64,000 nt of DNA from Amoebophrya sp. A120 (lineage: Eukaryota > Protista > Dinoflagellata), in NCBI GenBank assembly GCA_905178155.1, contig CAJINV010000001.1, forward strand, positions 7,905,599 through 7,969,598, read 5' to 3'. Positions 31,682 to 54,510 of the stretch are shown piece after piece (position 1 is the stretch's first letter; every line of letters begins with the position of its first letter). Made by a program: the position numbers and the translations under genes. The notes under the pieces are model-generated. The model worked only from the letters and a program-made list of their open reading frames with translations, did not search any database and was not told the origin of the DNA.

Positions 31682-32575
31682 GTTGGAGAAATATTTGAGG
31701 AAGACGAGGAGCTGCTCACAAAGGAGATGTCGCAGCTGGCCTTCCTTGTTCATGACACTCGTCAACTGCATATAAGAATCAATAAACAAATTAAATTTCG
31801 GGAAGTTGTTGTAGCTGTTTTGGCTCGCAGTTTGTTATTTCTTTTGTGTACACTTATGCTATCTATCCGACTGCGCATCTGATTACTTTGTGTCGGCGGA
31901 ATTATGTGTATCTTGAACATTTTTTCACGCTCTGACCTGTGCTAGGCACAGAATTTCGAGAACTGCAATTTAGAGCCTTTATCTTCTGTTAAAGTTGAAA
32001 TTTTTTAGCTTGCGTCACGTTTTTTTCTGGGCGTTCCGAGATAGCAACTTGCGATTTGGACTGCATAATTCTTGGTGCGTCTAGTATGTGCGAGCAATTT
32101 GTAAACTGCGTACTCGGAATAAATGCTTTTGCTGCGAAATTTTCGCGCTTTTTGGGGTAAGAAAAGAAACACTCGTTGTTCGTGGAGCAGCGGGAAAACG
32201 CAGTGAAATCTGAACATCGCTAGAAGGATCAAAAACAAATGTCGTAAGTGTCAAAACCGTCGTCCAGCCTTTCTCTTTGAAATTATAATCAATCGTGGCG
32301 GGGTACTATTCATCGTCTTCGTTAGTTTATTCGTGGCATTGTCGTGTACTCGTGTACTCACTTCACAGGCTACTTGAATACTTCGCCAATTGTGTGAAGC
32401 CCTTTATTGGGTGACATCATCATCTATCATGATCCAAGTAGTAAGGAAACAAGGTCGGAAAGTTCACGGCTGGTTATCGAAGTCCAGATGGGCAGACTGA
32501 TCGTTTTACTTTTGCGTTGCTCGATGAACAGAGTATAATAAACACTGGCGCCAAGAAAACAAAGTTGACCATCTC

Positions 32576-35500: not shown

Positions 35501-36638
35501 GGTGGCGGACTACCCGAACCAGCTGCTGATCGTGTACCAGCGGCACATATGCATTGCAAACACGGCTGGGCGGTCTGGAAGAATGCAAATTTGTATTTTT
35601 GCACGACATTTCGGATCAAAACAAAATCTGTCAATGCATGGAGCGGATCACGACCAGCACCACTTATGTCTGTCATGCGGAGTCCTGATTCCTCATGCTA
35701 CTATACGCGTCATGTATCCTGCAAAAAACTTGTGATGCGTGGTTGATTACTTCTGAAGGTCGTTTCTCATGGAGGGACCAGCAGTACAAGTTTCCAGATT
35801 CCGCCATATTTGCGACCCATAGCGCACCCGCGACGGCGCTATCGAGGCGGAACAACAGATGGAGCTCTACGCGCGCACCGCGAAGGACGCCGCGGTGTGG
35901 CACAAGGCGATGAAAATTTTTCTCCAAGCCTCGCAGCAAGAAGCCTACCGGAAGAGTGACGAGTATGCGGAAATGCTGGAGCGCGAACGACGGGAGATTC
36001 TGCAGCGGGACGTGGCCATTAACCGAAAAACAGACGAACAACAGCACGAATTGGAGGCCATGCTGCAGGAGAGAAAAGGAAATCCACAGCCATCGAAAAC
36101 AAATACCGGTAGCACAGGTCGACGAGGGACAAGCTACGGACAGGTGCGGCAAGTATACGAACGAAATCGCTTTTTCTTTTGTTGTGTTATGCGACAGTTC
36201 TTCATGAAATATGAATCTACTGATGGTTGTTCAAGATTGTGAGGTATCATTGTCGCTGAAGCAGGTAGAGATGTATGATGCTGATCCCGCTGCGTGCGCT
36301 GTAATTGGGATAGTTTGTGGAAAATATTGAAACGGATTACGTAACACGCCACGACTCCTGTTCCCGTTGTCGGCTCTTGCAAGATGTTAACAGTGAGCTT
36401 GTAAAATGAGTAACGACATGCCCAGGTTTCTTCATCTGCAACTGCAAGTGCAGCTGCAGTGCGAAAGTCTCGTGGGAGCAAGGAGGACGATGTCGCGGAC
36501 GGATTGACCTTTGGGAAAGTGATGAAAGGCGTGACCGCGAATGCGCCCCCTGGGCCAAACAGCAAGCCGCCAGTTGTGCGTCCAGATGAAGAGAGTCCCG
36601 CCGATGGCGGGACCAGCGACGATGTTGCGGTGACGTGA
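32576..36638 (+). CDS. PH-like domain protein (paralog 2) with long low-complexity N-terminus; 7 exons
   Basis: Four introner introns (33858, 34458, 34780, 35548) and GT-AG introns 35207-35347 and 36144-36425. LRYFHVSRKRDEWVLDWY...DDRGTL...MELYARTAKDAAVWHKAM aligns with the 30115 gene. Confidence 0.72.
33858..34109. mobile_element. Introner/MITE, family A2, opposite orientation (252 bp)
   Basis: Internal sequence is the reverse complement of 13396-13647 and 63359-63610. TSD GCACT. Excision gives MDQHYRDYD. Confidence 0.95.
34458..34668. mobile_element. Introner/MITE, family D
   Basis: TATCGTGGGAAAAAAGTGTTACAGTTACACA ... TGTGTTACTGTAATACTTTTTTCTTGTGATA; TSD CTGGA. Excision gives HDLDEQAK. 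Confidence 0.88.
34780..35040. mobile_element. Introner/MITE, A1-like, opposite orientation (261 bp)
   Basis: Family A TIR; TSD AGGCC. Excision gives QQKAIQSL. Confidence 0.9.
35548..35821. mobile_element. Diverged family A introner
   Basis: TATGCATTGCAAACACGGCTGGGCGGTCTGGAA ... TTCCAGATTCCGCCATATTTGCGACCCATA; TSD GCACA/GCGCA. Excision gives YQRHTRDG..QQMELY. Confidence 0.8.
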
Positions 36639-37865
36639 AAGCTTTTGGTTTTTTATTCAATAGTTGTCTTATGCAAATATGTTTTTCATCTTTCTGACAT
36701 TGATTTCCTAGTAATCTCCCACATATGAATATGTTGGTGGTCGTGGTGCGCTTGTTGTACTAGGAGGCTCAAAGTATTTGCAATATTGTTTACAAGGTAG
36801 CGAAAATTAAAGGGCTAGTTCAGGAGTGCCTCCTTGTACTGATTCGCAGGATCATGATGTCGATCACATTCATTGTCCCCCAGCCTTCCTGGACAGCTAC
36901 ATAGTTTTGTAGTAGAACTCCGTAGTTCAGTAAACCGACCTACCTAGCACCAGTTGTGAAGTTTTGGAGCATATGACCATCATGACCACAGTAATGATTG
37001 TTTTGTACAAAAGTTTTTTGACAGAAAGTTACATACTCGATGATTGAAGTGCAGCGAACTAAAGACACAGTTTCTTGTAACGTTCCGGTTCGTAGTACAG
37101 CGGGTTTGCGTTTGTGTCGAGTGATTGATGTCCGAAATTAATGCATCAATGAGTGGTAGAGGAGGCTTTCACAGAGTCGTAACAGCACAGGCGCCGAGAG
37201 GTTGTGGCTGCTATCGGTCTCCCTTCCAACGCTCCGTAGTATAAAAGACCCACTCATGATTGCCAGGGCGGGAATGAAGGTGAAGTCTTCTGTTGAGGGA
37301 TGAAGGTGCGGTAGGACGAGCGGTAGCCGTTTTCAAAATAAAGTGAACACTGATACAAGTAAAATATCCCGAGGACCGCAGCTGCCTCGATTGCAAAGGC
37401 GGCGAAGAGCGTATCTGTTGGTGGCTAGTAAAGGGCACACTATTTTTACTTAATGAGTTAAAGTGATTCCACCACCGGACATGATTTTGATATGAGAACT
37501 GCGCCGCGCATTATTTGGAGGACTGCAGTTGCCGGCCCAAGCCCAACAAGGCGCTACAGGCGGCGTATAATTTGCTTACGCGAGGAGTGTGCAAAAACGC
37601 TGCATAGCTCTTGAGCAAGGGATGGGCAGGAAGAAAAAGAAGAAAGCACCAGCAGGACGCCGACGTCGTCCTCGAGACGAGGAATCCTCGTCCGGGACCG
37701 CTCGGTCGAGGAGGCGCGGTTGCGGAGGGGGAGTAAGTGGAGAACAGTTTTAGAAGGAATAAGCTGTGCAAGGATAAGAATATCAACATGTCATTTGCTT
37801 CATCTTGTTCTCTTGCTGCTTCGACGCCGTCCCGGTCCAGCTAGGGGTTCTTCGTCGTGAAGAGG

Positions 37866-40800
37866 ATGTTCGCGCAGCGCTATAGTGGCACACGACGCGA
37901 ATCATGCCGCGGCAGCAGCCGGCGGGGGTCGTGTTGCCTGGTTTCGGCCGGCAAGAGCGGCAAAGAGTTTTCGCTGGTCAGATTTCTTGTTGTACTCCAC
38001 CAGCTCCTTCTTTCACAACTTACCCCAATAGACGCAGGGTCTGCACCAGCGCCGCCTGGCGAGGTTTCCCCTCCTTCCTTCGAAGGTGCGGCCGCGGAGG
38101 CGAGTCCGAGCTTCGTCATGGAATGGAATCCACGGGGTCGGGATGCAGTGGCCAACGCCCCCTTATTATCCTCAGTAAAATGAACGTGGTCCCCTTCACA
38201 TGCATAATCAAGATGTTGGGAATCAATTGTGCACACACAAACACAAACCCACTAGTTTTGGAACTTCCGCACGACAATGTAGTCGTGTCAGTTTAGCTAA
38301 TGCAGCAGCCGCACCCTATCCTGATTACTTACATATACAGACAGCATGACAAGTTCATCTTTCCCGTGAGAATGAGAAAATGGCTTCCATGGGGAGCTGC
38401 AGCTGTGTGAGAGCTCGAGATCTTATGGGCGTTCTGATTTGCATGAAAAATGCGGGGTGGGACGTTTTTACTGAGGAGAATTGTACGAGCGGCTCCGGGG
38501 CGGCTACTACGCGGAGCTACCAAACATGGCCGGGATGCAAGTGCGAGTCTTACCCGGCCCGGTTCCCAATGTGGTCACAGACTCAATGCAAATGAGCTGC
38601 GATACCCGCGAACAGACGTTGCTGCATTCGCGCGTGGGTCTCCGCTACGCAGGCCGGTCGCAGACGGGCCCGGAGGGTGCTCGGGGGAGAGCCATACGCC
38701 TCGTTTGTCTGCTCATGCGGCTCCCGGTACGCATAGTGCAATCAAAAGTGTGGTCTTTGGCGTAGAGCGGAAGGGCATAGTAACAAGAAACTGCTTTTGA
38801 TATACTTTGGAGCACAATATGTATGAGCGTCGCTCCGCTGTGCGACGCAAGGTGGTGGGTCGTGCATCAATCGATTCGAAAGAGAAATACTATTTCTATA
38901 TGCTCCAGTACCAGTACTGCCGCGACAATAATCTCTACGGCACGCAGTCCGACGCTTGTTTTGCAGTGGATACCTGGGAGAGGACGAGGACGGCAGCGAA
39001 TCCACTACCTGGGATGTGATTGAGTTTGAAATGGACCGCAAAGGCAGCACTTTGTACGACCAGGCGAGCAACGTCTACCTGGATCAGAAAGCCGCGGACC
39101 CGGAAAGGATGCGCAACGACGATTATGATAACGACGGCGCGAAAGCGTCAGGCTCAGGCAGTCAGGAGGACTTGGAGGAAGAAGATCCCCTTGCGCGGCC
39201 GCGGCCCCGGGGGCCCACGAGTACGACAACGGGCATTGTGGCGCCGACCGCTTACGGGTTCCGCGGACAGGAAGTGGGCGAGCAGCAGCAGAAGGAGGCT
39301 GTTGATCGCGTAATCGCGAAGAAGTGGTCCCTCGGCGAAAAGAATCCCTATTTCTGCTCCTTCGGCAACGCAGACCTGGTGCGGGCGAACCACGTGGACG
39401 ACCTGTCGCGCATCAACATCCGGTATCAAACGCAGTTATTTCATCTGGGTGTGGAAGAAAGCGGGCGCTAGTCATGCAGTTTTTGCATGTGCCCGCCGAC
39501 GCCGAGCATGTTGTTCAATGTCCAGCGCATTCAAGGTGAAAGCCTTGTACTCATATCCAAGGTGCAGTATTTGCATCTGCGCGAAAGTCTGGACTGCTCG
39601 CCGAGCGTGACAAAAAATTCTGCGGAGGCCTCTCCATGCCTAGTCTCCATGACAAATGTTGCCCTCTCGTCGTCCTGGAGACAAAAATCACACGGCCTTT
39701 GCTGACTAGGCGACACAGAATTTTGGACCTCTTCCAGAATCCGCATCAGAAGTTTGCATCCTTTCAGTAGACCTCCCAGAACTATAATTTGCAATGCATA
39801 TGCGTTGGATCTGCATCGGGTCCGAGCGCCTGATCCGGAAGAACACGTTGGGCGAAATCAACACGCGAGAGCAGTGCCGGGTTCCTCACATGACCTGGTA
39901 CTCTGGTCTGGCGCGGCTCCGGAACATGGCGCCCTTCACCGGGCTGCAGGTGCCCCCCGAGACGGGGTCGGAGCGCCAACGCGCCTATCCGGGCTTCGCT
40001 TTCACTGAGTCATTGCGGATTTCGATGCGGCCGGTGCGGATGACCACAACGGGGGGCGAAGTAATCGTCGATCCTAGGGAACAAGGTGTGGCGGATGTTG
40101 ACACCTTCTTGAGCATGGAAGGCAAGAGTGGCACTAGCATATCGGCCACGAAAGAGCTCTACGATATCGTACCGACTAAACTAGAAGCGGAGGATTGCAC
40201 CTACGTGATAAGGCCCGGCATGTGCATGCCGATCAAACCGTGGCCCGAGACCGGCGTCCCCGTGCGGTGCGTCGAGGTGCCGCCGGAGGGGCTTCGCGAC
40301 GCCGGGATGGTGACCGTGAATGGAGCCGTGTGCACAAAGGTGTGCAACGCGAGCGACCGGTGCGTGGCCTTCGAAGTCCTGGAGCCCCGTCATTGCTGCC
40401 TCTTTCGGAACCCCGTCTACTCCCAAGACGATGCGGCCGGCGCGCGGGTGCCCGCGGGGTTTAAGGCAAAGGCAGCTGACGCCGGTGGTCTTTCTCCCTC
40501 CGCCACGTCGCAGCGTCGCTGTTATTTTCGGCGATGTGGCCTGGTTTCTGCCGGTTCGCTGCCCGGAGCGTACGCACTATATTACCACGAGCTGTCGGGG
40601 ATGATGTTCGTCTGGATCTCGAACCTGCTGCAGCAGAGATACGGCTTGGGGCGGCGCAGCCGGTGGTACCCCCTCTTCAAGAGTCACGGGATAATCGGCG
40701 TCAAGGGCTACGAGAGGGAGCTCGTTTGGCTGCAGCGCATATCCATGGCAGATTTGCTCGGGTCTCGAGCAGATAAGTGAACAAGATGGCTGGAGGTGTT

Positions 40801-43800
40801 ATTACGTTGTTTTTGCCTCCCACCGAGACTTTTGTCGACAAGGTTTCGCGACGACAAATCAGGGTGTCGTTAATTGAGTCACCCGCCTTGGTCGTGCTGA
40901 GTAGAGACACCAGAAGAAAAAAACGCGAATTTTCTGCGCATTTTGCTTGAGGAACACCTTAGAATGAAAGAAGGTCTCCACTTCTCTGCTAAACCTGATG
41001 CATTTGGAATGAATGATGGAACGGAGGCCTGTTTCGAATGGACTGGAATGACGCGGTGCGGAGAAAGACGTTACTGGGGAAGTGCGGCTATCCTGTGCAA
41101 ACACTTCCACACTACAAAGCATCATAAAGTACTTAGTTTCATCTCGTAGTTTTTGGTTTTCGTAAGTGTACTTCTCGTGCGGAGGCACTGCTGAGCCTTG
41201 GATATAGTATATGTCTGTTGAAGCAGGGCCATCAACTCTCCTACGCAATAAAAAACTGCGACGCGCAATCAGAGTTTCAATTTCTTGACCTGCCCTTCAA
41301 AAGAAATTCTAATCCGTCGAATACATTGTCCTTCAAAAGAAATTCTAATCACCATGGGGGCGGGTCGTTTTTCTCAGGATGACCAGTCGAGCTTCTTCGC
41401 TCGCCACTGCTTTCGGACGCTTGCGCAGGAACGCGCGGGACGTGGTTTTGTGCCGATATCCACTGCTGCAAATACCTTGATATGGGCCGGACAGCGCAGT
41501 TTGTGATTGCTTGTTTGTATTTTCACGAAGGCCCCAGAGACCACGTCGGGAGCGAAGCTTGTGCATGATGAAGTTTTATTGAGATAGTAGGCAGCAGCGC
41601 CTGTTGCGCGCGACCGTTTTTTTTCCCGCTCAACAAACAGGTAGCACTACCTTCCAACAGGCATCTTCGCAGGGTGTGGACGGATGATGCGTCAACCCGA
41701 GAATGACAATGAAGTTTCCTTGCAATTTTGAGTTGAGATGACCGAAACTTAAGGGAGTATTTGCGATGGATGACTGGACGTGGTGAACAACGTTCCAGAG
41801 ATCGGTAGATGTTGCCAACAGTACCTAGAGGCCAACGGCGGTCTCCTGCTCACTCGCGCCACGGATATCCCAGTACACACCGCCCTAGATGAGCAGGGAC
41901 TTTCTTCGTCGGCGAACAGCGGAGGCAGTTCGAGCTCCGGGGCCAGCGCAGCTGCTGCTGCTTCGCAGGAGTCCAACTTGCTTGGCGGCTCGGAGCTGGA
42001 GCGAGCGTCCGCCCCGGGGGGTGTCACGTGCGAGTCGGTGTTGCAACGCGTCGGACCTTTGTGGAGGGAGATGCAGGAGGGGGTCCCGCTCCACTTGTTG
42101 AAGGCCTTATTTCTCTCGATCACGGAAGACGCTGTGACCGTCCTCGGAGCCTATCTTTACATGACTCAGCCGCAGAATATGAATAACTCCCCCGTTGGTG
42201 GTAGTGCAGTTGTTCCACCTGCTGAGACCACCACGACCGGAGGTGGCGCCTCCTTCGGAGCCCCTGCTATCGCGGCCGCCACACGAGAATGGAAGGGGCC
42301 CCTCGATTACGGTTTCTTCGAGCACGCACGACGGCTAATGCTTTCCATGAAAGCGTACGTGGTCTCCGACAAACCGGCTTCGTCCTCGGAAGGCTCCAGA
42401 GACGCGCAGGCTTTCGGGGATGACTCTCTGACGCTGCGCCGGATGGCGGCGACCCGCGTCTGGCCCCTGCTGCAGCAGCTGCTGCGCGGGTATCTAGTGC
42501 TGATCATCTTGCGCGCCCCGGCCATCTGGTCTCCAAGTGAGCAAGACCATTGGGCGTTCACGCAGAGGGTCGAGCTGGTGCGGTGCAAGGGCTCGGGACG
42601 CTTCGCGGCGGCCGACGGGATTTATGGGAGGCTGAAGGAACACCATGTGGACGAGGAGGTACACCGGTGAAAATTTACGCCCCCACGCCTGCTGTCCTCT
42701 TGCAAAGCCTCTGCGTCGTGTCGAACCAGCGTTCTTACCGGCGCTGGCCTTCCGTGGGCAGGTAGAATGTCCTGCATGAGGATCTTTCTTCTAGCAGTGC
42801 TGGCGCTTCTGCTATGATTTTGCCACGGGCTCCATGAATATGCTGCCAGATGAGTAGTGCTAAGTATGTAATCATGATTAATATGCGGCGGACCTGCCAG
42901 AGCATTTCTGCCACTGCCGGAACTGCCAGAAATAACGTTTGCGCAGAAGTTGCATCTTGTTTTGCAACACAAGGCGACTACAATTTTGTCCCCTCCAGCA
43001 TTCAAAAGAAAGCTCTACGTACATTGCGTCTTGTTCTGTGCTGAGGGGTGGGGACGTTTATTTTGCACCGGATAGGATGGTGCGCCGCACTACCCGTCCT
43101 ACGACGATCTGCCCTGGGCCGCCGCGCTGCTGCAGAAAATGAAGCAGGATAAGCGGCCGGGGAATCCGGCGGAGGCCTACTATCGCATGGACGTTGAGCG
43201 TCTGTCCGCGGAGGATCTCGATGCGGCCGCTTTGATGACAGACGAAGAGGCAGGTGCGGCGTCGGCGCCCGGTGACGGACGCAATAGGCCGCCTAGTCAC
43301 TCGTCTTCTTCATTCGTGGAGCCTGATTTCGGCCAGCGCAGAGGAAGACGGGGACGGGAGAGGGACTCCACTCGGCCTGCTCGCGTGCTGTTCACGCCGG
43401 GGCAGCGTTGGGAGATTCAGATGGAGAAAATGACTTTGCGGGAGAACACCGGGGCAGCGTCCACTTCGAGACTGGAAGACATTTGGAACTGGCGGGACAT
43501 CAAGTGTACCACCACGAGCGATGGCGGCGCGAGCAGCGCTGCGAGAACGGAATGTCGGGAGGAGGAGGGTGGGGAAGCTGAATCTACGAAGCCTGTACAC
43601 TCTTCCACTTTCCTGCACCAACTCAACACAAGGACGACGCAGGTGCGGTGCCACCCTCTTACTGGACGAGGCCGAGTAGACGCGGAGCAAGGGGCGCGGT
43701 TGGACCTCTTGCGCGAGCGGTCGGACCTTCTGCGGCACGTGATGGCAGTGTTGAAGGCCGGTCGGTGGTACATCGGACGCATCCTACGAAACAGCGCGTC

Positions 43801-46800
43801 TTCAAAACGGAGTACTTCTAGGCCGAAGGCGAGCCGCGTCGACGCGGCGGGGGCTGGCGGAAACCAACCGGTGTCCTCCGTGCAGGGCAAGGGGGTAGCA
43901 GCAGACATCGATTTGAACAATCTAGCACAAGGCAGCGCGCTCCGGGCGGATATGGAACAGGAAGCGGCGCGCAGACGGTACCTCGAGCCTCTTCTGCACG
44001 AGGAGCAGACTGCCGTCGAGGAAAAGGAGCGGAGACTGGGGTAAAGTCATTTTATTTTTCAATCATATGAGATTTTTGTTTGTTGCCTGCGAAGGAACAC
44101 ACATGCTGTTTTTTGCCTGCGCCGTTGCTCAGCTCGTCTCCGTTGCTGAGACAGAAGTAGCTCAGGAGAGCAAGAAAGGTAGTAAGCGAAATGCCTTTTG
44201 TTCAAAATAATCTCGATGCACTACATCTACAACTACACCAGGGAATTACTGGGGTCCGAGTTCGCGCGCAGCTTCTTTGGTTTCGATGCGCCGAGTGTGC
44301 GGGAACTTTCTGCCGTTGCGGTGCGGCGATATTTGACGTTCGTGGACTGCATGCAAAGGGAGTTGGTGGCTAGCTGCCAAATTGAAGAAGAAAGTCCGCC
44401 TAGCGTTGAGTACCTATGCAATGCAGAAAGTGTTGTAGCGGAAATATTCTTTACTAGACGCAAGTAACCACAGCACCGGTCGGTGCATGACGCGTCTGTC
44501 TGCGTTTGTGATTTCTTTGCGCAAAGATCAGATGGTTTCAGTAGATCTCGTACCACCAATGTCTAATAGACAAGGTGCACGAATAAACTTCGTTTCGGAA
44601 AAATAAACATCAAGGGTGGAGGAAGAATCGATGCACTCAAAAACTTTTGCAGGGCATAGATTTCTTCTTACAGCCGGAATCCGGGTGCTAGAGGGCAGCC
44701 GCGGGCCCGGCCCCTGTTGGTGCAAGACGCGATCGCTCCGACCGGCGCGGCTAAGGGAGATCCGGCGTCAGGCTGGCTAGAGAGCGAGGCACACGATCGC
44801 GTGCAATACGCGTCGCTTGATCCGTTTCAAGCGCGGGCGGACTTCGAGCGTCTCGTGGCGGCGGAATGGGCGTCTCTGGGCGACGCCGGCGACTTGCTGA
44901 AGCATCTTCCCGCGCAGTGCTATGTCGAGCCGGGTCTCTCTGCCTCGCCGGACGATCTACGTGAGAATTTTTTGAAGGTGAGGAGAAAGACGTCCTACGG
45001 ATTAGTCAACCGGGCCGACCGTGTCAACGAGGTATCCACTGCAAAAGTATCGTACTCGTATAAATGCAAGTCTTGCAACATTACAAATCTTGTTCCCAAG
45101 GCAAATCAGTATGACAAATTCGTTTTCTCATGCTGAGAAAATGCGATTTATACTAGTGCGTTGCTTTTGCAGTTCATACGAGGCACAGGAGACGAATTTC
45201 GTACTGATCCGGGTTCGGATGCAGTTCCAAATCTGCCCGTCGTGGTTGGCGCAGGACCCGGTGCGACGATTCTGGTGGTTTGGGTCCGTTCCCCTGCTGC
45301 CCGAGGTGCAGGGCGTACTTTCACTGGCGTTGCTGGGTCGCGAGATGGTGCCCAATGGGCTGGTCTTGCTTGCGCGCTACTTCCGATACCTGCCCCTCTC
45401 GGAGATGTATCACCGGGTGGCAAAGTTGGTACAGAGGGACCGAAAGATGTACCCCAAGTATGGGCTTCCGGCCGTGACCGGCCGAGAGGAGTGGGTACAG
45501 GAAGCCGGTGCGGTGGCGGTGCGCCTTGCGCGGCTGGGAAAGCGTCTCGAGGATAAGGGGGGCCTTTTTTTGGCCGACGAGCTGGCGCTGCAGTCGGCAA
45601 TCACTCTGGTGGACTACAATAAAGTGTGTACCGAGGCGGGGGCCGCCGGTTTTCCTGTCACCGATGAGTCAGGAAACAATTATGCGGCTGCGGACCCTAC
45701 TGCGACCTCAGGCAGGACCAGGTACAGCAGCGACACTAATGTGAGAGACGATGCGATGAACAGTGCCGCGGCTTCTTCCCCGTCACAGGAGCGTCGTGTG
45801 CCAGTAGAGGAAGGAGATGCGGACGACCTTCTGGCCAAGTGTTCGACAGTGTACTCCGAATGGATCCGGACCATTTTCTATGAGAGTGCAAAACTCGTTC
45901 TCCCCGTCATCAGCGCTGTTTGCCTGACCACAGTCTGAGGGCCGCCCGCCCAAATAGCACTTCTTCACTCCGCGGGTGGATATGCCATGCAGAAGCAGCA
46001 CAGTCTGTTTATGTCATGCGGAAGCTGTGTGATTCAATCGTTTTTGTTGCTGCTGCTTTTGTTGCTGTAGCAGATAGAACCTACCATGCAATTATAAATG
46101 AAAGGCAGGGGTGGAAATTGTGATCTCTCATACTTTATCAACTGCAAATATGTCTGGGTCTGGAGACTTGTGATGATGAATTGTGGAGGACTGAAATACT
46201 TCCCAATGCAGCCAAGCATGACGAGTTTGCCGCACACTTTCTCATGCGCAGTCGGCATGAGAAACTGCGCTTTTGTCTAATGACATCAAAAGATAAAGAG
46301 GGCGTCTTTTTGCTAGTCATGCAACACAGATTTTACAAGAATGCAGGACTACTAGCATTACAAGTTCCATGCTTCTAGACGTATTTGCAATGCATATATT
46401 TTGGGCAAGAACTTTCCGCGGATTCACAACGCAAACCTGGTTCCCATCCCAGGCACCATGGACCTCCAGATCGTCCTGCAAGTGCAGACGCGAACGCAGG
46501 CCATGGTCACCACCATGGGCTGGAAAGAGGCGTTCGTACGGTTTGCAGATGTGCTGGTTTCCCAACCGGATGCGGATTTTCAGCGGGGTACGGTTTTATC
46601 CGTGGAGCCATCGGGAGAGCGGCTAGCGGTCAGCGGCTCCTGCGACGATGGTGAGGAGGGCGGAGTCCTGCTTGTTGCTCTGCCGTCATTATCGCACAGA
46701 GAATTTTTTTGATTCTTGGACCGCAATACCTACCCCTTTCCGGGACACAGTCTGTTCCCCAGATTTTGTTCTTTTGTACGGAAATTATAGAAGATCGGGT

Positions 46801-49800
46801 AGCTCTTTGCACGTACATTCTGTTTTACTACAAAAACGTGCATTCCGGTGCTGGAATTGAAAGTATGTTCTGATTAGCATTAATAAAAATTCTCTGTGTG
46901 ACATTGCTTCGTTGCGCAAGGCGGTCGGCAGGAAGCGTCCAAAAGGATTGTGCGGATGCGATCGCCCTGCGTGCGGTCACTGCATTGGGAGGCTACCGGT
47001 CTGTTGGTGGAGGATCTCTCAGGCGGGCTTCGAAGTCTGACCCCTCCGGCCGAGAATCCCACGTGCGGGGCGGCAAGTGGCGACCCGTCGGGCGACAGTC
47101 CGCTTTCTGGAAGGCTGGACCAAACAGGGATTTGTTCTGCAGAGCCTGTGCGGTTTCCGGGGGTAGGTCGCCCGCTAGCGGAAGAGGAGGCAGAGGTGAA
47201 TCCGGGCTTGCGGCCCTACCACCGCATTTGGGAGCAGACAGCGACCGCTACGTTTCGCTGCGCTCGTGATTCTAAGTTTACCTGCATCTCCGCCGGAGCT
47301 CGGGTTGCGCAGTTGTATTATCGCATCACGCACTTGAATGACGTTTCCTTTCCCAGCTGGGGCACGGTGCGGATACGGGTGCAAGTTAACGACTGGGCCG
47401 AGATGCAGTGCAACGTTGAGAAACGCGTTTACTGCGATCGCAGTGGGGATGCCAAGAACTTATGCACACGTGTAGAAGAGAGGGCGGAAATGTCGTTTGG
47501 GGACGTGTACGAAACCGGCGTTGGTACTATTACTTCAAATACGAACTCTGATATGTTGAATTTTGTTTAAGTATCGCCCGGAGCTACGCTCAGCAGCTAC
47601 TTTCTGAAACTGAGTCACTCGCACTTGCGTCTGCGCGAGTGGAAAAACCGGGCACGAGCACTGATGTTGGGCAGCACAGGATGAGGTGAATTATATTCCG
47701 ACCCGAGCCAGTCATTTTGCTGGCCATCCATTTCCGTTTGACCGTGCTGCCAGGGCAAGATCGATTGTTTGAGTACTCACAGATTACGAACTATCTCAAC
47801 TTCAGATCTCGACTCGAAAGGCCGATCGTTCGCGTGGCGCGGTCTTCGCGGGGGCTTGATGAGTCGGGTCGACGGGCGGCCGTCCATGCGGCAGCTGAAG
47901 GTGTTCTGGCAGGTGTTTTCGATGCTGGACGCGTGTGGCATGAGGGAGGTGTGCACGGGCGGGTTTGGGCCCGAATGCCCTATGTGGATGTCCCGAGCGT
48001 TGACGGAAACGACGGCGCATCCGCAAGAGCGCGACACGGTGTTCGTCGAGTCGCCGGTGCAGCAGTGCGCCCACCTCGCGGACGTTCGCTCCACGAAGGT
48101 GGTGGATCAACTGGTTGTTGTACCCGGGGACCTCCTGCATATCAGCTGCTACCCCCGTGTATCCACGGCAGATATGTCTGGGTGGGGAATAAGGTTGCGA
48201 AGCAAAAAAATTGCGAATGGTGTGCGCACTGCGATACGCAGCCAAGCGTGACAAGTTTTTGAGCTGCTATGTCTTTTAGTATCGGCATGGAACTACAAAT
48301 TAATAAATTGCGGCTTTGCATGACGGACAAGAGGCGCCTTTCCTGCTCATGCGTCACAGAGTTAAGTAGAGAAAGAGTCTCCTGATGACAGACAAGTAGG
48401 ATGACAAACTTTCACTCTTCCAGACGCAGACAGATTTGCAATGCATACCGTGGCGGCTCCCCGGACGAGAGCAGCGGCAGCACCATAGTGGAGATTCCCG
48501 AAGTCGACTTCGTTCCCGTCGCGGGCGCCGGCGAGGACAGCAAACTCGCCTTCATGTACGAGTATCAAACTTCTACCACAGATAAGCGCACGACCTCGTT
48601 GAAGTCTTCCGCCACGCTGACACTGCAAGGAAAGACGACGACGTTCGCAAAGGCCGCGTCGGACCCGAATGGACTTGGCTTTTGCGAAGAGCAGCCTCCG
48701 GCGTTTGGGGCGCGGGGGCAAGGAAACTACAATCGCGGGACGTCCCGAGAAGGTGCAAGCACCTTCGTACCGCGGCCACGGTGGTCGTCGTACCAGCCCC
48801 GCGATTCCGCGGCCACGGAAATTTCGAACACCGGCGCAGTTCTCGCACAGAAGGAACTTTCACCGGCGTCGGGCGGTGGATTTTCCGCCAGGACAAAGGA
48901 CGACGGGGGCAGCGTATCCTCGTCTTCGTCCCAGGGCCAGAGCCGGCCATCGCGCCTGGTTTTTTTGCGCCCCAGCGAGCAGCCCGCGTGGCGCGAGAAG
49001 CAGCGACCACAAGACCGCATGCACCTGCGAGTGCAGTGCAGCGTACTGGACACCAGCGAGCAGCGCGCGCCACTGCGGCGCATGCTCTCCCAGTCACTGC
49101 TCACCTTTCTCACCATGAAAGACCGCTGCATTCGTCGCCCACCTGCAGAGGAACCTCCCGACCTGCATCGCGGACCCGCTATTCGTATCCCACGCAAAAG
49201 CGTTCTCAGTTGCAGTCGTTTTTTGATGTAAGAGTAGGCAGGGCGAAGGACTTAGCAATCCGAATATAGTACATTCATCGAGACAATAAGAGCCGCAAAG
49301 TGCCAATTTTTGCCATGCATTCGGGCCGTCGTTAGTAGTACATCATGCCTGCGACTGCAGAACTTTTGCAATGTACAAGGTCCTACGTGCAGGCAGCAGA
49401 TACCGGGGAGTACGTGCCCCTTTCTGAGCTGCTGACGGGACAGGGATTGGGGCTAAAGGTCGCCGAGGACCTGATTCGTGCGGACTCCACGCTACTGGAT
49501 TCGAGCGGGGGCAGTCGGGAACGACCCGAGGGAGGACTACTGGATTCCGCCGGCGACGACTCCGGGCTTCCCCCGTTCGGGGGCGGGTTGAAAAGCGTGT
49601 CGCTGTTGCGGCACTACCGACAACAGAAAACCGCGGCGGTGCGCAAGTCGACGTTGCACGGGGTCTTTTCCTTCGCGTTCGAGCAACCGCTGCACGAGCA
49701 GCTGGAGCCCGGGCAGCGGTACACGCTTTCCTGCGAACTCGGTACCCTGCTCCGCAGCACCTTTTCCACAAGGAGCGCGCCGTCGAGCGAGAACGAGGAC

Positions 49801-51843
49801 CTGCGAGACACCGCTTCAGACGCTTACTTCTTCGCGTTTCGCCGGGCGCAGAAGGACTTTCTGATGCCGACGCCGTTCTTCGCGAAGCGGCCTGAGTTCC
49901 AAGTGAGCAAGAGTAGCAGACGCACGGGGCCCGCGGTCGCGGTGCTGCGCGCGAAGAGCGCACTCAGCGAGGACAGCGACACCTTCGTGAACTCGGTTGC
50001 CGGGGGGAAGTGCTTGCTGAGGGGCGTGAGCCACATGCACTGGCTGCGAGTGCTTAGTTTGCTGCCCGAGCCCACCGCGTGGAAGGATCACGACGAGATT
50101 CTGCACGAGGAGACCTTCCGCGGCGAGGACGGCGTGACCTACTTGGCGGACTGCTACCCGGTGGCGCCGAACGGGGTGACGGGATCTTCCGTCTCCGTGG
50201 AAGTCACGTTCCCAGCGGACTTCGGGCCGCTGGTGTGCGCCGCGCCGCCTCCGTTCTTTCTGTACGCAGTGCTTGTCTCGTTGTTCTTTTGGCTGACTGT
50301 GAGAGACACCGTGAAAGTGTTCGGTAAGGAGCAGCTACACTTCCTGCGATCGCGCGTCGTGGCCGGTCTGAAGCTGGCGGTCGCCGCGAGCGCCATGGGT
50401 GCGTTTATTTTTTTGGTCTTTGCGGTGTTTCTGGCCGCCGAGTGTACCGGGGTCGGGGTGATCCTCTCCCTGATCTTGCTAGTGGTCGGCCCGGGGTGCA
50501 CCCAGGTGGTGTTTCCAGAGCTGTACCGTTGGTTCGTGCTGGGGCGTGCCGTGAAACGGCTCGCCGCCCTGCGTGACTCGATCGACAACGTGGTACAGCG
50601 CAAAGCGATCGCCGAGCTCCACGCCAGCCTGGTGCAGCGGTACTTTGTGTTGTGCAGCACAAACACCTTGCCTATGTCCGTGGACGCCGACGGAAACTTC
50701 CAGGCGCGCCTGCCCGCCCCCCGGCTCAGCGCGGCGGTCGTCGGGAGCAACAGCAAAAATAAAGCCGGGGGTGGTCAAGGTCAACAACAAGAGCAACGGC
50801 CGCTGGAGCGCGAGGGGATGCTGCAGCTGCTCGAGGAGCTGGAGAGCGGGTTTTCGCTGCTGAAGCAGGCGGCGGCCGCCGAGTCCGACCGGCTGAAGCG
50901 GTTGCTGCAGGTGGCGTACGACAACTACAGCCAGCAGGTCGGGTGGGAGTCCCTGGTGCGGATTCCCAACTACACGTGGCCGGGGAACCCAACGGCCGCG
51001 CAGCCGGACGGGCCGGTGTGGTGGCAGCAGGACGCCGAGTGGATCCAGATGTTCCACGACCGCACCAACGGCGCGAAGACCGGGTTCGCGGCCCGCTTGT
51101 CGTGGTACAAAGCGCAGGCGGCCTGGGCGCGCGCCTACTTCGTCACGAAACTGTCCGAGGCCGTCACGAACTTCTCGCTCGCCAACACCCCCGGCAAGCT
51201 GCAGATGAGCGCCAGCTTCTGCCAGTCCTCCTGGAACGCGCGGTTCGCGCGGGAGGGTGGCGACGTGCTCGAGCGGGAGCCCTTCAACAACGACCGCAGC
51301 TGGACGCAAACGGAGCTCTCCGACAACGTGAAAATGATCAGCGACACGCTGTTCACCAGTGTCGCGGCCCTGGGCGTGGGCCCGCCGAAGGACGCCGCGC
51401 GCGCGGGGGCCAAGATCGAGGAGATTTTGTCCGAAAAGGACGCGGAAAAGTTCCCGGACCGCGACTGGTGCCCGGAGCGGTACATGAGCGACTACCTGCG
51501 CGCGCGGGTGGTGTTTGCCACACCCGCGGCGGTCACGGGGTTCTTCTGGTACCTGCTGCTGTACTTCCCCGGGCTGGACGTGATTCGGGTGAAAAACAAA
51601 ATGAAAAAGCGCGACATGGTCACGGCGGCGGACATCCACCTCAACCTGAGGATCCCGGTCCCACCCTTCACGGGCGAGAAGCTGTACCACATTGCCGAGC
51701 TGCAGCTCCTCCTAGAAAACTTCGTGCTGGTGCGGGACCTCGAACACAGGTATTACGAGATCAAGCGCGCGAACAAGTTCGTGGAGCTGCTGGCGCCCGT
51801 CTTTCCGGAGGAACGTGAATCTGCGTCGGAAGGACCAGGGTGA
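37866..51843 (+). CDS. Giant (~3,250 aa) receptor-like membrane protein: signal-like N-terminus, Cys-rich/PAN-like ectodomain, ~3 TM helices, C-terminal RelA/SpoT-like synthetase domain
   Basis: About 17 exons joined in frame by GT-AG introns (41129-41377, 44041-44241, 45933-46104, 46651-46920, 47524-47805) and 10 introner introns. One junction (~40740-40920) is unresolved. TMs at ~50250-50500. C-terminal motifs PPK..ARAGAK, SDYLRARVV, VIRVKN, DIHLNL, HIAELQL and EHRYYEIKR. Confidence 0.6.
38167..38479. mobile_element. Degenerate introner, family C
   Basis: TATCCTCAGTAAAA ... GGGACGTTTTTACTGAGGAGA; TSD CTTAT/ATTGT. Excision +5 gives NAPLYERLRG. Confidence 0.7.
38728..38972. mobile_element. 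Degenerate introner
   Basis: TACGCATAGTGCAA ... TTTTGCAGTGGATA; TSD CCCGG/CCTGG. Excision gives MRLPGEDEDG. Confidence 0.7.
39424..39800. mobile_element. Degenerate family A introner
   Basis: TATCAAACGCAGTTAT..TCTGGGTGTGGAAG ... ATAATTTGCAATGCATA; TSD TCCGG/TGCGT. Excision gives RINIRWICIG. Confidence 0.7.
41457..41772. mobile_element. Degenerate introner
   Basis: TATCCACTGCTGCAAATAC ... GTATTTGCGATGGATG. Excision +5 (321) removes stops and gives GFVP(N/D)VVNN. Confidence 0.55.
42660..43074. mobile_element. Diverged introner (415 bp)
   Basis: TACACCGGTGAAAATTTACGCCCCCAC mirrors GTGGGGACGTTTATTTTGCACCGGATA; TSD GGAGG/GGATG. Excision gives VDEEGAPHYP. Confidence 0.8.
44415..44658. mobile_element. 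Degenerate introner
   Basis: TATGCAATGCAGAAAGTGTTG ... CAAAACTTTTGCAGGGCATA; TSD decayed (GTACC/GATTT). Excision +5 gives VEYPSYSRN. Confidence 0.6.
45033..45178. mobile_element. Introner/MITE, family B (146 bp)
   Basis: TATCCACTGCAAAAGTATCGTACTCGTA is shared with the 24046 element; TSD CGAGG. Excision gives RVNEAQETNF. Confidence 0.88.
46136..46396. mobile_element. Family A introner (261 bp)
   Basis: TATCAACTGCAAATATGTCTGGGTCTGGA ... GACGTATTTGCAATGCATA; TSD TACTT/TATTT. Excision gives VISHTLGKNF. Confidence 0.82.
48160..48447. mobile_element. Family A introner (288 bp)
   Basis: TATCCACGGCAGATATGTCTGGG ... TTCCAGACGCAGACAGATTTGCAATGCATA; TSD CCGTG. Excision gives CYPRGGSPD. Confidence 0.88.
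49186..49377. mobile_element. Degenerate introner
   Basis: TATCCCACGCAAAAGCGTTCT..GCAGTC mirrors GACTGCAGAACTTTTGCAATGTACA. Removing element +5 (197) is frame-consistent. TSD lost. Confidence 0.5.
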
Positions 51844-52677
51844 GGTGCTGAAACCAGATGGAGAAGAATTAGAATTAGAATTAGAAAGAAGAAGTGCTTT
51901 TTACTAAACCAAACGCAAACAAATAAGCGAAAAAATGTTCAGAAATGTTTTGGCTGCTCCTGTCAGGCCGTCAGAGCAGTGAGAGATGTAAGTAACTGTA
52001 ACTAACCTAGGTTGGCAAGAAAAGCAAGGCTCCCTCTTTCGCTCTGCCTAAGCCTGTCGATGGCGGAGTGAAGATGTATGTGGTCTCGGAAATAAGACAG
52101 GGAGGGTGAAAAAAAGCACCCGTAGCTATACTGATTCCTTCTGATGTGTTGAAGTGGTATGGAAAAGAGAAAATGAATGCGTGTCGCGCAGTGTGGCTGG
52201 CGCCTTCTAGAGTCTCTCAATCGAAAGGTGAGATGTGCTTGCTGCGTTCTTGATGTTCGCTATTCGAGGATTGTCAGATATTCAAAAGATCCGGGAGACC
52301 GCGCACCGATCTATCACCGTTCCCCGATCATTTTTGCCATAGGTTTTGTGTTATTCGATCTCATTTCGGCAGATCGAGTTCTGTACAGTAGTGTATGATG
52401 TTCAACTTGAACCACGATCTGTGCTGCTTTCCAGGCTTTTTCTGTCTTTAGTGATGGGTGAAGCAAGCGCTAATTTTATCTCGATGAATGAAGCAAACGA
52501 TCTCAGGCTCGGGTCCGGCACATTTCTTTTTCTCGGACATTGCGCAAAGTTCTGTAGAATTTTTGCATCGAGAATTTTGAAGATCTTTCCGATCGTCTTG
52601 ATTTTACCAAGCCTCGTACTTCCATTGCACAAGATCTTCTGGAACAAAAAAAGACGCGTATATACAAGTCTGCGACG

Positions 52678-54510
52678 ATGTCATCTCGTGGACGAAAGGT
52701 ATCTCCCTGCGCACTTCCGCTGCTGCTGTTCGTTCTCACTCAGACCCGAAACTTCATCGTCGAGGGGTCTTACTCCAGTTCATTTTTTCACCGCCTCGGG
52801 AGTCTCGGGAGGCGGCTACGGGTGACGGAAGACACACGCGAGCCCTTGGTGCTGGGGGAGAGCACGCCGAGCAACCAGCGCCTGTCCTTGTTTCTGGCTC
52901 GTCGCGCACCGGATTCTACTTCGGCTGTTCTCCCCGAAACGGAGGGCGGGGAGGACGATGCGAGAGTTGGCAGTAGCGGGGACCTTCAGCAGCAGCAGGC
53001 TCGTGCCGTACAGGGGACTACACGCAGAGAAGATGTCGAAATGGGACGAGACAACCAGTACTCCTACACCGCGCCGGTAGAGTGGGAAGGTTACAGCTAC
53101 TACGCTCCTCCCGAGGTCGTGGTTGCCAGCGGGCCACGACCTGCCGTGCCGGCGGAGCTCCAGGTGAACGCCCCTCCCGGCCTTGAAGAAAATGAACGTC
53201 ACGAGGCGTTTCTGCCAAGGCACGACGGAGGCCCGGCACCCCAGCTGGGCATGCGACCGATAATACAGCCGGGGCAGGAGGACCAAGACCAACGGCTGCT
53301 TCTCCCTGATAACGCGGCACAAGAACCCGCCCTTGAAAGCGGCGAAGCAGTACCGCGGCAAGAACTAGGACAACAATTTCCCGTGCTTTTGGGTTCGACG
53401 AAGGTTCTGCGCGAAAGTGGTTCGCCCGGGGAAGAAAGTGAGGATAGTCTGTTTTTGGAGCAACTTTTCCGTGTCCGTGGCAGTGCTTCCAAAGTGACCG
53501 CAAGATGTGCGGCGCTACTAACGGTGCTGGCGTGTGTGAGCGCGGGGGCGTGCGGCAGCGCAGTCGTGCTGTCTGCAACAACGGCTCTGCGACGCCCGGC
53601 TTCCTCTCCCACGGCACGGCCCGACGACTCAACTGCCGCGGTCTGGGACTTCGATTTCAGCAGCGGCGACGGCCAGCAACAACACGAGGATTCCAGCCAC
53701 CGGTTCGCGTCGTTCGATCAGGAAGATCACGACGCGCATTGTGCGGCTTTTGCTCGGCATGGCCGGTTTCAGTATGACAGTACCAGCCGCGACGCAGTCG
53801 AGGATCAGTTCGACCAATATGCGTTTTGGTTGGACATCGGGGAGCGGCTCTCGCAGTGTTTGCAACGGGAGCAAAGATCGGCTGTAGAGCAAGTGACTAT
53901 GCGCCGAGAAGAAGACCATGCCCACCTTCCGTCGTCCTCGTTAACACGACCAACAAAGGAACAAGATAACGGCGAGGGAAGTGCAGTCTCTCGTGCAAGT
54001 AATCGGACAAATGTTTCGGACGCAGACCTCGACTTGCGGCAGACTCTTCTTGGCAGACCGCATGCAGCCAAGCATGCGGTGCGCGATGAGTCACCGCCCC
54101 CCTTCGGATATGCGCGCGGAGAATTAAGACGAAAGCAGGATGAGAAGGAGACCAACCACAGTACCATTCCAAAAGGAACACGGACTCTGTCCGAAGCAGC
54201 GGTCACCGTCGTTCCCAACCCTTTTCTCTTCCGCACACAGACCGCAAGTAGCTGTCTCAGCGTGCCGCTTCACAATACCGACGCGCATGTTCACTTTGGG
54301 CCGCGGTGCGCCGTGTGCGTCACGGATTTACACGAGTGTGTCGCCAGGACCAGCAGGAGAGCAGTCTGCGACGCCGCGTGCATGGGTCTTGGTTTCGGAC
54401 TTCCCGTGCGCGATCTGAGATTGCAGAAATTCAGGCCCTGTCTAGAATGCAGCACGCAAAGCACGGCATGTTGGGACAGGTTTCAGCAGTGCCTGCTCTT
54501 TGTTCGATAA
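52678..54510 (+). CDS. Uncharacterised protein with signal/TM segments and Cys-rich C-terminus
   Basis: 610-aa intronless ORF. Hydrophobic ALPLLLFVL and CAALLTVLACVSAGACGSAVVL; about 9 Cys near the C-terminus. Confidence 0.6.
   Translation: MSSRGRKVSPCALPLLLFVLTQTRNFIVEGSYSSSFFHRLGSLGRRLRVTEDTREPLVLGESTPSNQRLSLFLARRAPDSTSAVLPETEGGEDDARVGSSGDLQQQQARAVQGTTRREDVEMGRDNQYSYTAPVEWEGYSYYAPPEVVVASGPRPAVPAELQVNAPPGLEENERHEAFLPRHDGGPAPQLGMRPIIQPGQEDQDQRLLLPDNAAQEPALESGEAVPRQELGQQFPVLLGSTKVLRESGSPGEESEDSLFLEQLFRVRGSASKVTARCAALLTVLACVSAGACGSAVVLSATTALRRPASSPTARPDDSTAAVWDFDFSSGDGQQQHEDSSHRFASFDQEDHDAHCAAFARHGRFQYDSTSRDAVEDQFDQYAFWLDIGERLSQCLQREQRSAVEQVTMRREEDHAHLPSSSLTRPTKEQDNGEGSAVSRASNRTNVSDADLDLRQTLLGRPHAAKHAVRDESPPPFGYARGELRRKQDEKETNHSTIPKGTRTLSEAAVTVVPNPFLFRTQTASSCLSVPLHNTDAHVHFGPRCAVCVTDLHECVARTSRRAVCDAACMGLGFGLPVRDLRLQKFRPCLECSTQSTACWDRFQQCLLFVR

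Follow-up and report, generated by a model that had tools for sequence, protein, structure and literature searches.

What is encoded between 37.9 and 51.8 kb of a 64,000-nucleotide window of the Amoebophrya sp. A120 genome, where the + strand carries many stop-free stretches and the reading frame shifts from one to the next? The window (assembly GCA_905178155.1, contig CAJINV010000001.1, positions 7,905,599 to 7,969,598; all positions below are counted within it) had been the subject of a preliminary description, made from the letters alone, in which a giant surface sensor coupled to an intracellular pyrophosphotransferase was proposed. The region was found to contain one expressed gene, in which introners hide a multi-pass membrane protein of ~3,150 residues. 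In the gene model, the coding span extends from 37866 to 51843 on the + strand and comprises 14 exons, 13 introns, and 3,150 codons plus the stop, as confirmed by a frame check of the joined exons. The fragment count and length first read from the sequence (about 17 fragments, ~3,250 residues) were close to this model but inexact. The joined 3,150-residue model was used for the frame check and for hydropathy only; all searches and all folding were performed with single-exon sequences.

Transcript evidence was obtained from assembled contigs of the public run X1 (entered as 'RNA?'), which were placed on positions 44000-49999. The contigs of this run contain 72% of the sequence words of 42000-51900, as expected if the introns are missing. 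A single contig of 10,360 nt (depth 22.6) matches 44000-49999 as nine separate pieces, which gives eight joints: 44039>44241, 44413>44663, 45026>45178, 45872>46398, 46688>46908, 47522>47805, 48154>48448, and 49184>49382. It overhangs by 4,338 nt before 44000 and by ~2,139 nt beyond 49999, with its end near 52138. Once joined and continued to the stop at 51841-51843, the pieces read through from 44000 without interruption for 1,908 codons, whereas 28 and 57 stops interrupt the two remaining frames. With eight introns missing and a 5.7-kb frame restored by their absence, the contig can hardly represent genomic DNA or an assembly chimera.

Exon 14 (49382-51843), with a GC content at third codon positions (GC3) of 0.84, encodes the end of the outer region, three transmembrane helices, a cytosolic module, and the stop. 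ORF finders call an open reading frame (ORF) of 832 residues here that starts at ATG 49345, and the last exon might thus be a gene of its own, with the contig merging neighbouring transcripts. GC3 is lower in the upstream exons (0.53-0.75), the public gene model of the orthologue from Amoebophrya A25 begins at the last exon, and a contig across two genes does not prove one transcript. However, joint 49184>49382 links the C-terminal exon in frame with the upstream exons. ATG 49345 lies inside intron 13 (49185-49381, 197 nt), which has the introner-like ends TATCCCACGCAAAAG and CTTTTGCAATGTA and contains in-frame stops. Because the joint excises this ATG together with the flanking stops and restores the 1,908-codon frame, the 832-residue ORF was rejected as a separate gene; the A25 entry is moreover flagged 'partial'. 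Two genes are extremely improbable. The single gene postulated in the preliminary description was borne out by this spliced contig, which joins the C-terminal exon to the upstream exons. The expectation that standard gene finders would fragment such a gene also held: the public A25 orthologue, starting at the last-exon boundary, is a fragment, and introner-rich genes defeat gene callers.

The C-terminal domain (51295-51840) was assigned by searching the PDB with a family profile, by AlphaFold2 (AF2) modeling, by Foldseek and VIA-align comparisons, and by family conservation. A profile or structural match to RelA/SpoT had been set beforehand as the test on which the assignment could fail, and matches were obtained at both levels. 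Profile A1, built from 26 family members, returned three matches among 177,635 PDB sequences, all of them RelA/SpoT homologue (RSH) synthetases: BsRelP/YwaC at E 0.0067, with all motifs aligned over profile positions 51-173, an exported Streptomyces small alarmone synthetase (SaSAS), and the type VI effector Tas1. The AF2 model of the domain, computed with 40 family sequences, had a mean pLDDT (predicted local distance difference test) of 86.5. Among the Foldseek matches listed, the best were all RelP, RelQ, Rel, CapRel, or FaRel2, with 35 matches at E<=1e-3, a best E of 3.9e-6, TM-scores of 0.53-0.57, and a probability of 1.0. In VIA-align, which is independent of Foldseek and was run against 48,161 chains, the top 12 matches were all RSH proteins at Z 10.6-5.8 (RelP 10.6, RelQ 10.6, SaSAS 9.3, RelA 9.0, Rel 8.6, Tas1 8.0, CapRel 8.0, SpoT 7.5, FaRel 6.2). 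The next fold was RsfS/iojap at Z 5.5, and generic nucleotidyltransferase folds followed at 5.5 and below.

The motif order read in the preliminary description (K..R..K / DYLRAR / RVKN / DIH / ELQ / EH.YY) is present in full between 51379 and 51768, with GPPK..R...K at 51379-51414, DYLRAR at 51490-51507, RVKNK at 51586-51600, DIHLN at 51631-51645, AELQL at 51694-51708, and EHRYYEIKR at 51742-51768. PF04607 was touched by 2 of the 26 members (E 4e-4), and member P0067 touched the NCBIfam model YjbM/RelQ (0.0034). An Atlas cluster carrying PF04607 scored 0.93, and look-alike Atlas clusters were found in diatoms. A phmmer search of the PDB with the single domain gave noise only, and the family profile was needed. 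As judged from the predicted models, the C-terminal domain has the RelA/SpoT synthetase fold.

Active-site residues were mapped through the A1 alignment to BsRelP and the roles described for SaRelP (PMC5794853). In SaRelP, Asp107 and Glu174 coordinate Mg2+, and R78, K80, K88, R91, R112, and H190 bind ATP, with Arg78 stacking on the adenine; the G-loop tyrosine (Y151 in SaRelP, Y116 in BsRelQ) stacks on the guanine of GDP/GTP (PMC5794853). Both Mg2+ acids are kept in the family, D3034 (Asp107) in 36 of 36 members and E3103 (Glu174) in 35 of 35, and are aligned with DIAGVR and AEIQ of BsRelP. The phosphate-binding lysines K3000 (Lys80) and K3008 (Lys88) are each present in 34 of 36 members, and both the Gln after Glu174 (Q3105) and H3119 (His190) in 32 of 35. 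At R3039 (Arg112), half of the family has Arg and half has Thr; an extra Arg two residues earlier was found in 35 of 36. The G-loop between beta3 and beta4 reads KMKKRDMVTAAD, with Ala at the Tyr151 position, where the family consensus is Ser/Thr/Arg and no family member has an aromatic residue. The site appears intact on its donor (ATP-Mg) side and remodelled on its acceptor side. Since the G-loop Tyr is missing, the acceptor is probably not bound in the way GDP/GTP is bound in RelP/RelQ.

Altered canonical positions (Arg78 to Pro, VKD to VKN, the absent G-loop Tyr) would also suit a pseudoenzyme, in which the RSH-fold domain merely binds a nucleotide or acts as a scaffold, and in one relative from Amoebophrya AT5 (P0003) the last motifs have lost their Gln and His. 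However, in spite of the wide divergence of these proteins, the metal-binding and catalytic acids are invariant (35-36 of 36) and 34 of 36 members still have the phosphate lysines, as is typical of active enzymes. A pseudoenzyme was thus considered very unlikely, and an active domain was preferred.

The domain is preceded by a conserved helical region between membrane and enzyme (50554-51294), with long helices at module residues 13-35, 83-126, and 178-210 and a disordered loop at 36-82. The AF2 model of the 429-residue cytosolic module (mb18d44fc1fcb) reached a pLDDT of 87.7 and a predicted template modeling score (pTM) of 0.85, with three long helices packed with the enzyme domain. Structural relatives were found for the enzyme part of the module only, and an NCBIfam search with the module returned nothing meaningful. 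A phmmer search with the last 233 residues against 1.84e9 representatives yielded 69 proteins at E<=1e-3, 7 of them at E<=1e-30. These proteins belong to Amoebophrya AT5.2 and A25, Dinoflagellata sp. MGD, and Symbiodinium natans or lie on unnamed transcript or metagenome contigs; all are unnamed or 'hypothetical', and those closest to the A120 protein are from Amoebophrya A25 and AT5. P0002, P0004, P0013, and other relatives align from 50554 on, just past the third transmembrane helix. In 11 closer long relatives, including Symbiodinium natans CAE7208487.1 and two Dinoflagellata sp. MGD proteins, 2-6 transmembrane-like segments lie 300-400 residues ahead of the catalytic Asp; more distant family members are soluble. 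The A25 orthologue (CAD7952939.1, 'partial') starts at the equivalent of the first residues of the last exon and shares ~34% identity overall with the A120 protein, with near-identity around the motifs. As read from these alignments, the conserved unit is the transmembrane bundle together with the helical region and the RSH-fold domain.

Two other relatives have unusual arrangements. P0042 (329 residues, JGI/IMG) carries C-terminal EF-hands (Pfam E 9.5e-9), which recalls the Ca2+-activated RSH (CRSH) of plants. In P0059 (2,142 residues, ENA, on a 3.1-Mb contig), the RSH-like domain was matched in five separate stretches, which may represent a tandem array in another eukaryote.

Three hydrophobic helices (TM1-TM3) were found at 50245-50301, 50368-50439, and 50449-50514 (model residues 2619-2637, 2660-2683, and 2687-2708), with Kyte-Doolittle (KD) peaks of 1.96-2.49, in agreement with the ~3 helices predicted near 50250-50500. 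The A25 orthologue (P0010) likewise has 3 such segments. As read from the sequence, the charges are acidic before TM1 and in the TM2-TM3 turn, and strongly basic in the TM1-TM2 loop and after TM3. By the positive-inside rule, this pattern predicts an N-out/C-in orientation, in which the first ~2,600 residues face outward and the enzyme faces the cytosol. A cytosolic location of the enzyme fits the need of the domain for ATP.

The giant N-terminal region appears fast-evolving and lineage-specific, without recognizable domains save one possible PAN/apple module. No Pfam domain was found in the outer region, searched as large ORFs and in-frame exons (E<=1 on exons, E<=10 on pieces). Cys amounts to ~2% overall, with one cluster of 10 Cys in model residues 451-600; the cluster at 40196-40405 shows the Cys spacing of apple domains. 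The sole PDB sequence match of 40190-40432 was the apple domain of Toxoplasma MIC4 (TgMIC4), weak at E 0.9. Atlas PAN clusters scored 0.78 for this region, below the lead threshold, and no Pfam PAN match was obtained. The claim of a Cys-rich, PAN/apple-like region was therefore sustained for one Cys cluster with apple spacing, but the region is not generally Cys-rich, and the module itself is putative. The signal-like segment FSLVRFLVVLHQLLLSQL (37968-38021), 35 residues past the first in-frame ATG, is likewise present, but it is borderline hydrophobic (KD 1.51), and ~612 nt more of transcript lie upstream.

Taken together, the gene is reasonably likely to encode an expressed multi-pass membrane protein whose diverged RSH-type domain is an active ATP-dependent pyrophosphotransferase at the inner membrane face. 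What the analysis shows is the fold, the survival of the residues that bind Mg2+ and the ATP phosphates, the conservation of the module, and the membrane anchoring in dinoflagellate relatives. In the proposed mechanism, ~2,600 N-terminal residues would lie outside the cytosol, followed by the three transmembrane helices and a cytosolic module of ~430 residues, in which the long helices would pack against the diverged RSH synthetase domain. This domain would act as an ATP-dependent pyrophosphotransferase at the inner face of the membrane, on an acceptor that is probably bound otherwise than GDP/GTP in RelP/RelQ, the G-loop Tyr being absent. The transmembrane and outer parts may set the activity through the helical region, as in receptor-type cyclases. 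From the initial proposal of a surface sensor with an intracellular pyrophosphotransferase, the architecture was retained (one transcript, transmembrane anchoring, RSH fold, no hydrolase), but the support for signal peptide and PAN module was weak and the G-loop Tyr was absent.

Several points weigh against this reading. The active site is remodelled, with Arg78 replaced by Pro, Ser84 by Arg, the Asp of VKD by an invariant Asn, and the G-loop Tyr151 by Ala. The structure of the domain is a prediction, and the link to RSH proteins at the sequence level is weak (E 0.0067). No Pfam or NCBIfam model was significant on the window protein, the gathering score of PF04607 was not reached, and a search of the PDB with a longer profile, A3, was swamped by coiled-coil matches, with loss of the RSH match. 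The placement of the N-terminal residues outside the cytosol is deduced solely by the positive-inside rule, and exons 1-5 and the start codon are putative. The RNA nature of run X1 is a guess, although a contig without eight introns can hardly be DNA. Finally, three RNA-seq runs from 2026 with the same species label (X7-X9) gave zero reads on 44000-49999. As the gene is expressed, these runs may stem from another strain or another stage, or be mostly host, and their silence is no test of the gene.

The closest known systems are RelP and RelQ (SAS2/SAS1; 6ewz, 6fgk, 5dec, 5ded), which gave the best structural match (VIA Z 10.5-10.6, Foldseek E ~4e-6) and the best profile match. They share with the A120 domain the order of strands and helices, the two Lys, the Asp and Glu, the Gln, and the His-x-x-Tyr. 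In contrast, RelP and RelQ are soluble bacterial homotetramers of ~200 residues, whereas the A120 domain forms the end of a 3,150-residue eukaryotic membrane protein with a helical extension of ~290 residues, lacks the G-loop Tyr151, Arg78, and the VKD Asp, and has no PF04607 match. The same fold occurs in Tas1 (6ox6), the exported SaSAS (8vx3), CapRel (7ztb), and FaRel/FaRel2 (8pu1, 8pu4). The family motif P-x-K-x-x-x-R-A-x-x-K aligns best with Tas1, and the end of the domain (E-x-Q ... H-K-x-Y-E..R) aligns with SaSAS. The presence of CapRel (Z 8.0) and FaRel (Z 6.2) among the VIA matches and of FaRel2 among the Foldseek matches, together with an acceptor loop that is remodelled and basic (KMKKRDM), would fit an enzyme like the toxic small alarmone synthetases (toxSAS), which pyrophosphorylates a macromolecule (the 3' end of tRNA, another RNA, or a protein) at the membrane and not a free nucleotide. 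Such an activity was considered quite unlikely. The match to small alarmone synthetases is better than that to toxSAS, and the gene is single, conserved, membrane-anchored, and of ordinary expression depth, with no antitoxin-like partner or conflict-system context. The secreted and toxic RSH proteins are bacterial effectors or toxins with immunity or antitoxin partners; the A120 gene has no such context, and its domain would be tethered in the membrane of its own producer.

A census of RSH and hydrolase domains was performed by six-frame search of the 115.5-Mb A120 assembly; the search works exon by exon, and its counts are lower bounds. Only this locus was found with the family profile, PF04607, PF13328 (HD_4), and P0042, and neither a canonical RSH nor an HD_4/Mesh1-type hydrolase was detected in the genome (PF13328 absent). 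A Pfam search of the exons revealed no HD, TGS, or ACT/RRM domain. The absence of a hydrolase domain from the protein, as first described, was thus confirmed in the exons, none was found in the genome by the six-frame search, and the protein is indeed unlike plastid RSHs, with no PF04607, HD, TGS, or ACT match. No A120 protein with an RSH-like domain was found in the protein libraries searched. A homologue search with the last exon returned none, which means little because the words searched were taken from the first 500 residues, where conservation is poor, and a protein of 3,150 residues falls outside the length window.

These results bear on whether the protein is a true alarmone synthetase, in which case (p)ppGpp or (p)ppApp would be made in the parasite cytosol as a stringent-type second messenger. 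The nearest structures are the (p)ppGpp synthetases RelP and RelQ, the donor-site and Mg residues are kept, and the P-x-K-x-x-x-R-A-x-x-K motif is common to the (p)ppApp synthetase Tas1. However, the six-frame search revealed no HD_4/Mesh1-type hydrolase or canonical RSH, and the parasite retains no plastid, the compartment in which (p)ppGpp is known to operate in eukaryotes (PMC7789003). A true alarmone synthetase therefore appears unlikely, and a pyrophosphotransferase with an altered acceptor site is preferred.

Among eukaryotic RSHs (plastid RSH1-4 including the Ca2+-activated CRSH, Mesh1, and divRel), divRel is likewise single-domain and divergent; in contrast to the plastid RSHs, the A120 protein has no HD, TGS, or ACT domain, and the organism has no plastid. 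The 'divRel' divergent single-domain synthetases occur sporadically in diatoms, fungi, and Dictyostelium, some without an RSH hydrolase (Atkinson et al. 2011, PMC3153485). Neither alveolates nor transmembrane forms appear in that paper (0 occurrences; PMC3153485). Full-text searches of the literature returned no paper that combines dinoflagellates with RSH or ppGpp. It had been suggested that the system could be undescribed; the mostly membrane-anchored dinoflagellate family is unnamed, but the class of the domain was noted in eukaryotic algae in 2011 (PMC3153485). Receptor-type guanylate and adenylate cyclases have the same layout, with an outer region, a transmembrane part, a helical linker, and a cytosolic nucleotide-converting domain, and their catalytic fold is unrelated. 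The likeness would be one of working logic, with no homology.

Stress signalling in bacteria is built around RSH enzymes. To our knowledge, eukaryotic RSHs are known almost only as plastid synthetases and the Mesh1 hydrolase. If the proposed activity is correct, a conserved membrane-anchored RSH-fold family in a plastid-less parasite would point to a cytosolic use of RSH chemistry in a major protist lineage, and the changes in the acceptor loop suggest that its product is not (p)ppGpp. A dinoflagellate family of receptor-type RelA/SpoT-fold pyrophosphokinases, in which a membrane or outer sensor controls the cytosolic synthesis of a hyperphosphorylated nucleotide or a related product, is a tentative and more doubtful extension. 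It would imply a eukaryotic, non-organellar 'alarmone-like' signalling pathway, present also in a plastid-less parasite with no recognizable RSH hydrolase. The domain belongs to a known enzyme superfamily and represents a new, unannotated dinoflagellate variant; its function is inferred.

Upstream of the read-supported joints, introns 1-5 were placed by the geometry of the read-supported introns, in which the cut precedes TAT/TAC by one base and follows the ATA-like end by four. This resulted in introns at 38166-38483, 38727-38976, 39423-39804, 40739-41776, and 42660-43079, with TAT/TAC...ATA-like inverted ends, and all five keep the frame (chance ~(1/3)^5). The putative exon 1 (37866-38165) begins with the first in-frame ATG at 37866; frame 0 is open from 37845 after removal of 38166-38483, and the GC3 signal is weak. 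Intron 1 (318 nt, a multiple of 3) is a candidate introner with ends TATCCTCAGTAAAA and TTTTACTGAGGAGA, complementary at 13 of 14 positions. The putative exon 2 (38484-38726) lies in the open frame 38475-38762, in which GC by codon position (0.67/0.48/0.69) is coding-like. Intron 2 (38727-38976) is the weakest call, with a good 3' end (TTTTGCAGTGGATA) and a poor 5' end; a canonical GT-AG intron at 38727-38966 breaks the frame and was rejected. The putative exon 3 (38977-39422) has a GC3 of 0.75. It is followed by intron 3 (39423-39804), a candidate introner that is cut between G and TATCAAACGCAG and ends in TTTGCAATGCATA plus TGCG. The putative exon 4 (39805-40738) holds the PAN/apple-like Cys module.

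Intron 4 (40739-41776; 1,038 nt, a multiple of 3; ends TATCCATGGCAGAT and TTTGCGATGGATG) would join two frame-2 ORFs. Its coding score is low throughout; exons within it were set aside on this score, which is a weak exclusion. The junction near 40740-40920, which the first reading had left open, fits this putative introner. The putative exon 5 (41777-42659) is followed by the putative 420-nt introner 42660-43079, and exon 6 (43080-44039) has a 5' end placed by geometry and a read-supported 3' end (44039>44241). Exons 7-13 (44241-44413, 44663-45026, 45178-45872, 46398-46688, 46908-47522, 47805-48154, and 48448-49184) have X1 joints at all borders, and their frame is open.

The model explains 3,726 of the 4,338 contig nt upstream of 44000; ~612 nt must precede 37866, where frame 0 is closed. 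Either the 5' untranslated region is long, or further introns or exons lie there, and the N-terminus of the model is thus provisional. The candidate inverted-end pairs 36972-37492 and 37760-38022 are possible further introns. Removal of the candidate intron 37760-38022 would take away the proposed start codon and the signal-like segment. In the neighbouring + strand open frames 52678-54510, 32528-33916, and 35042-35743, no Pfam match was found at E<=0.01, and they provide no functional context.

In this organism, >60% of introns are non-canonical; introner elements, marked by inverted ends and direct repeats of 3-5 nt, account for many of them (PMC7789003). The introns of this gene combine inverted ends with short direct repeats and are removed precisely from the cDNA without GT-AG; they are the same in kind as the published Amoebophrya introner elements, with nothing new (Farhat et al. 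2021, PMC7789003). A strict scan for terminal inverted repeats with 5-bp direct repeats detected only two introners, 45033-45178 and 48160-48447. Most introns of the gene have degenerate ends, for which read evidence or relaxed geometry is needed. The 525-nt intron 45873-46397 appears to consist of two adjacent introner-like elements (~45879-46132 and 46136-46396), each with inverted ends, which were spliced out together. The depth of X1 contigs was 114 at 46000-46199 compared with 22.6 for the gene contig, which fits copies of the introner family in other transcripts or pre-mRNAs. Short loose-ended contigs were observed at 45040 and 46310.

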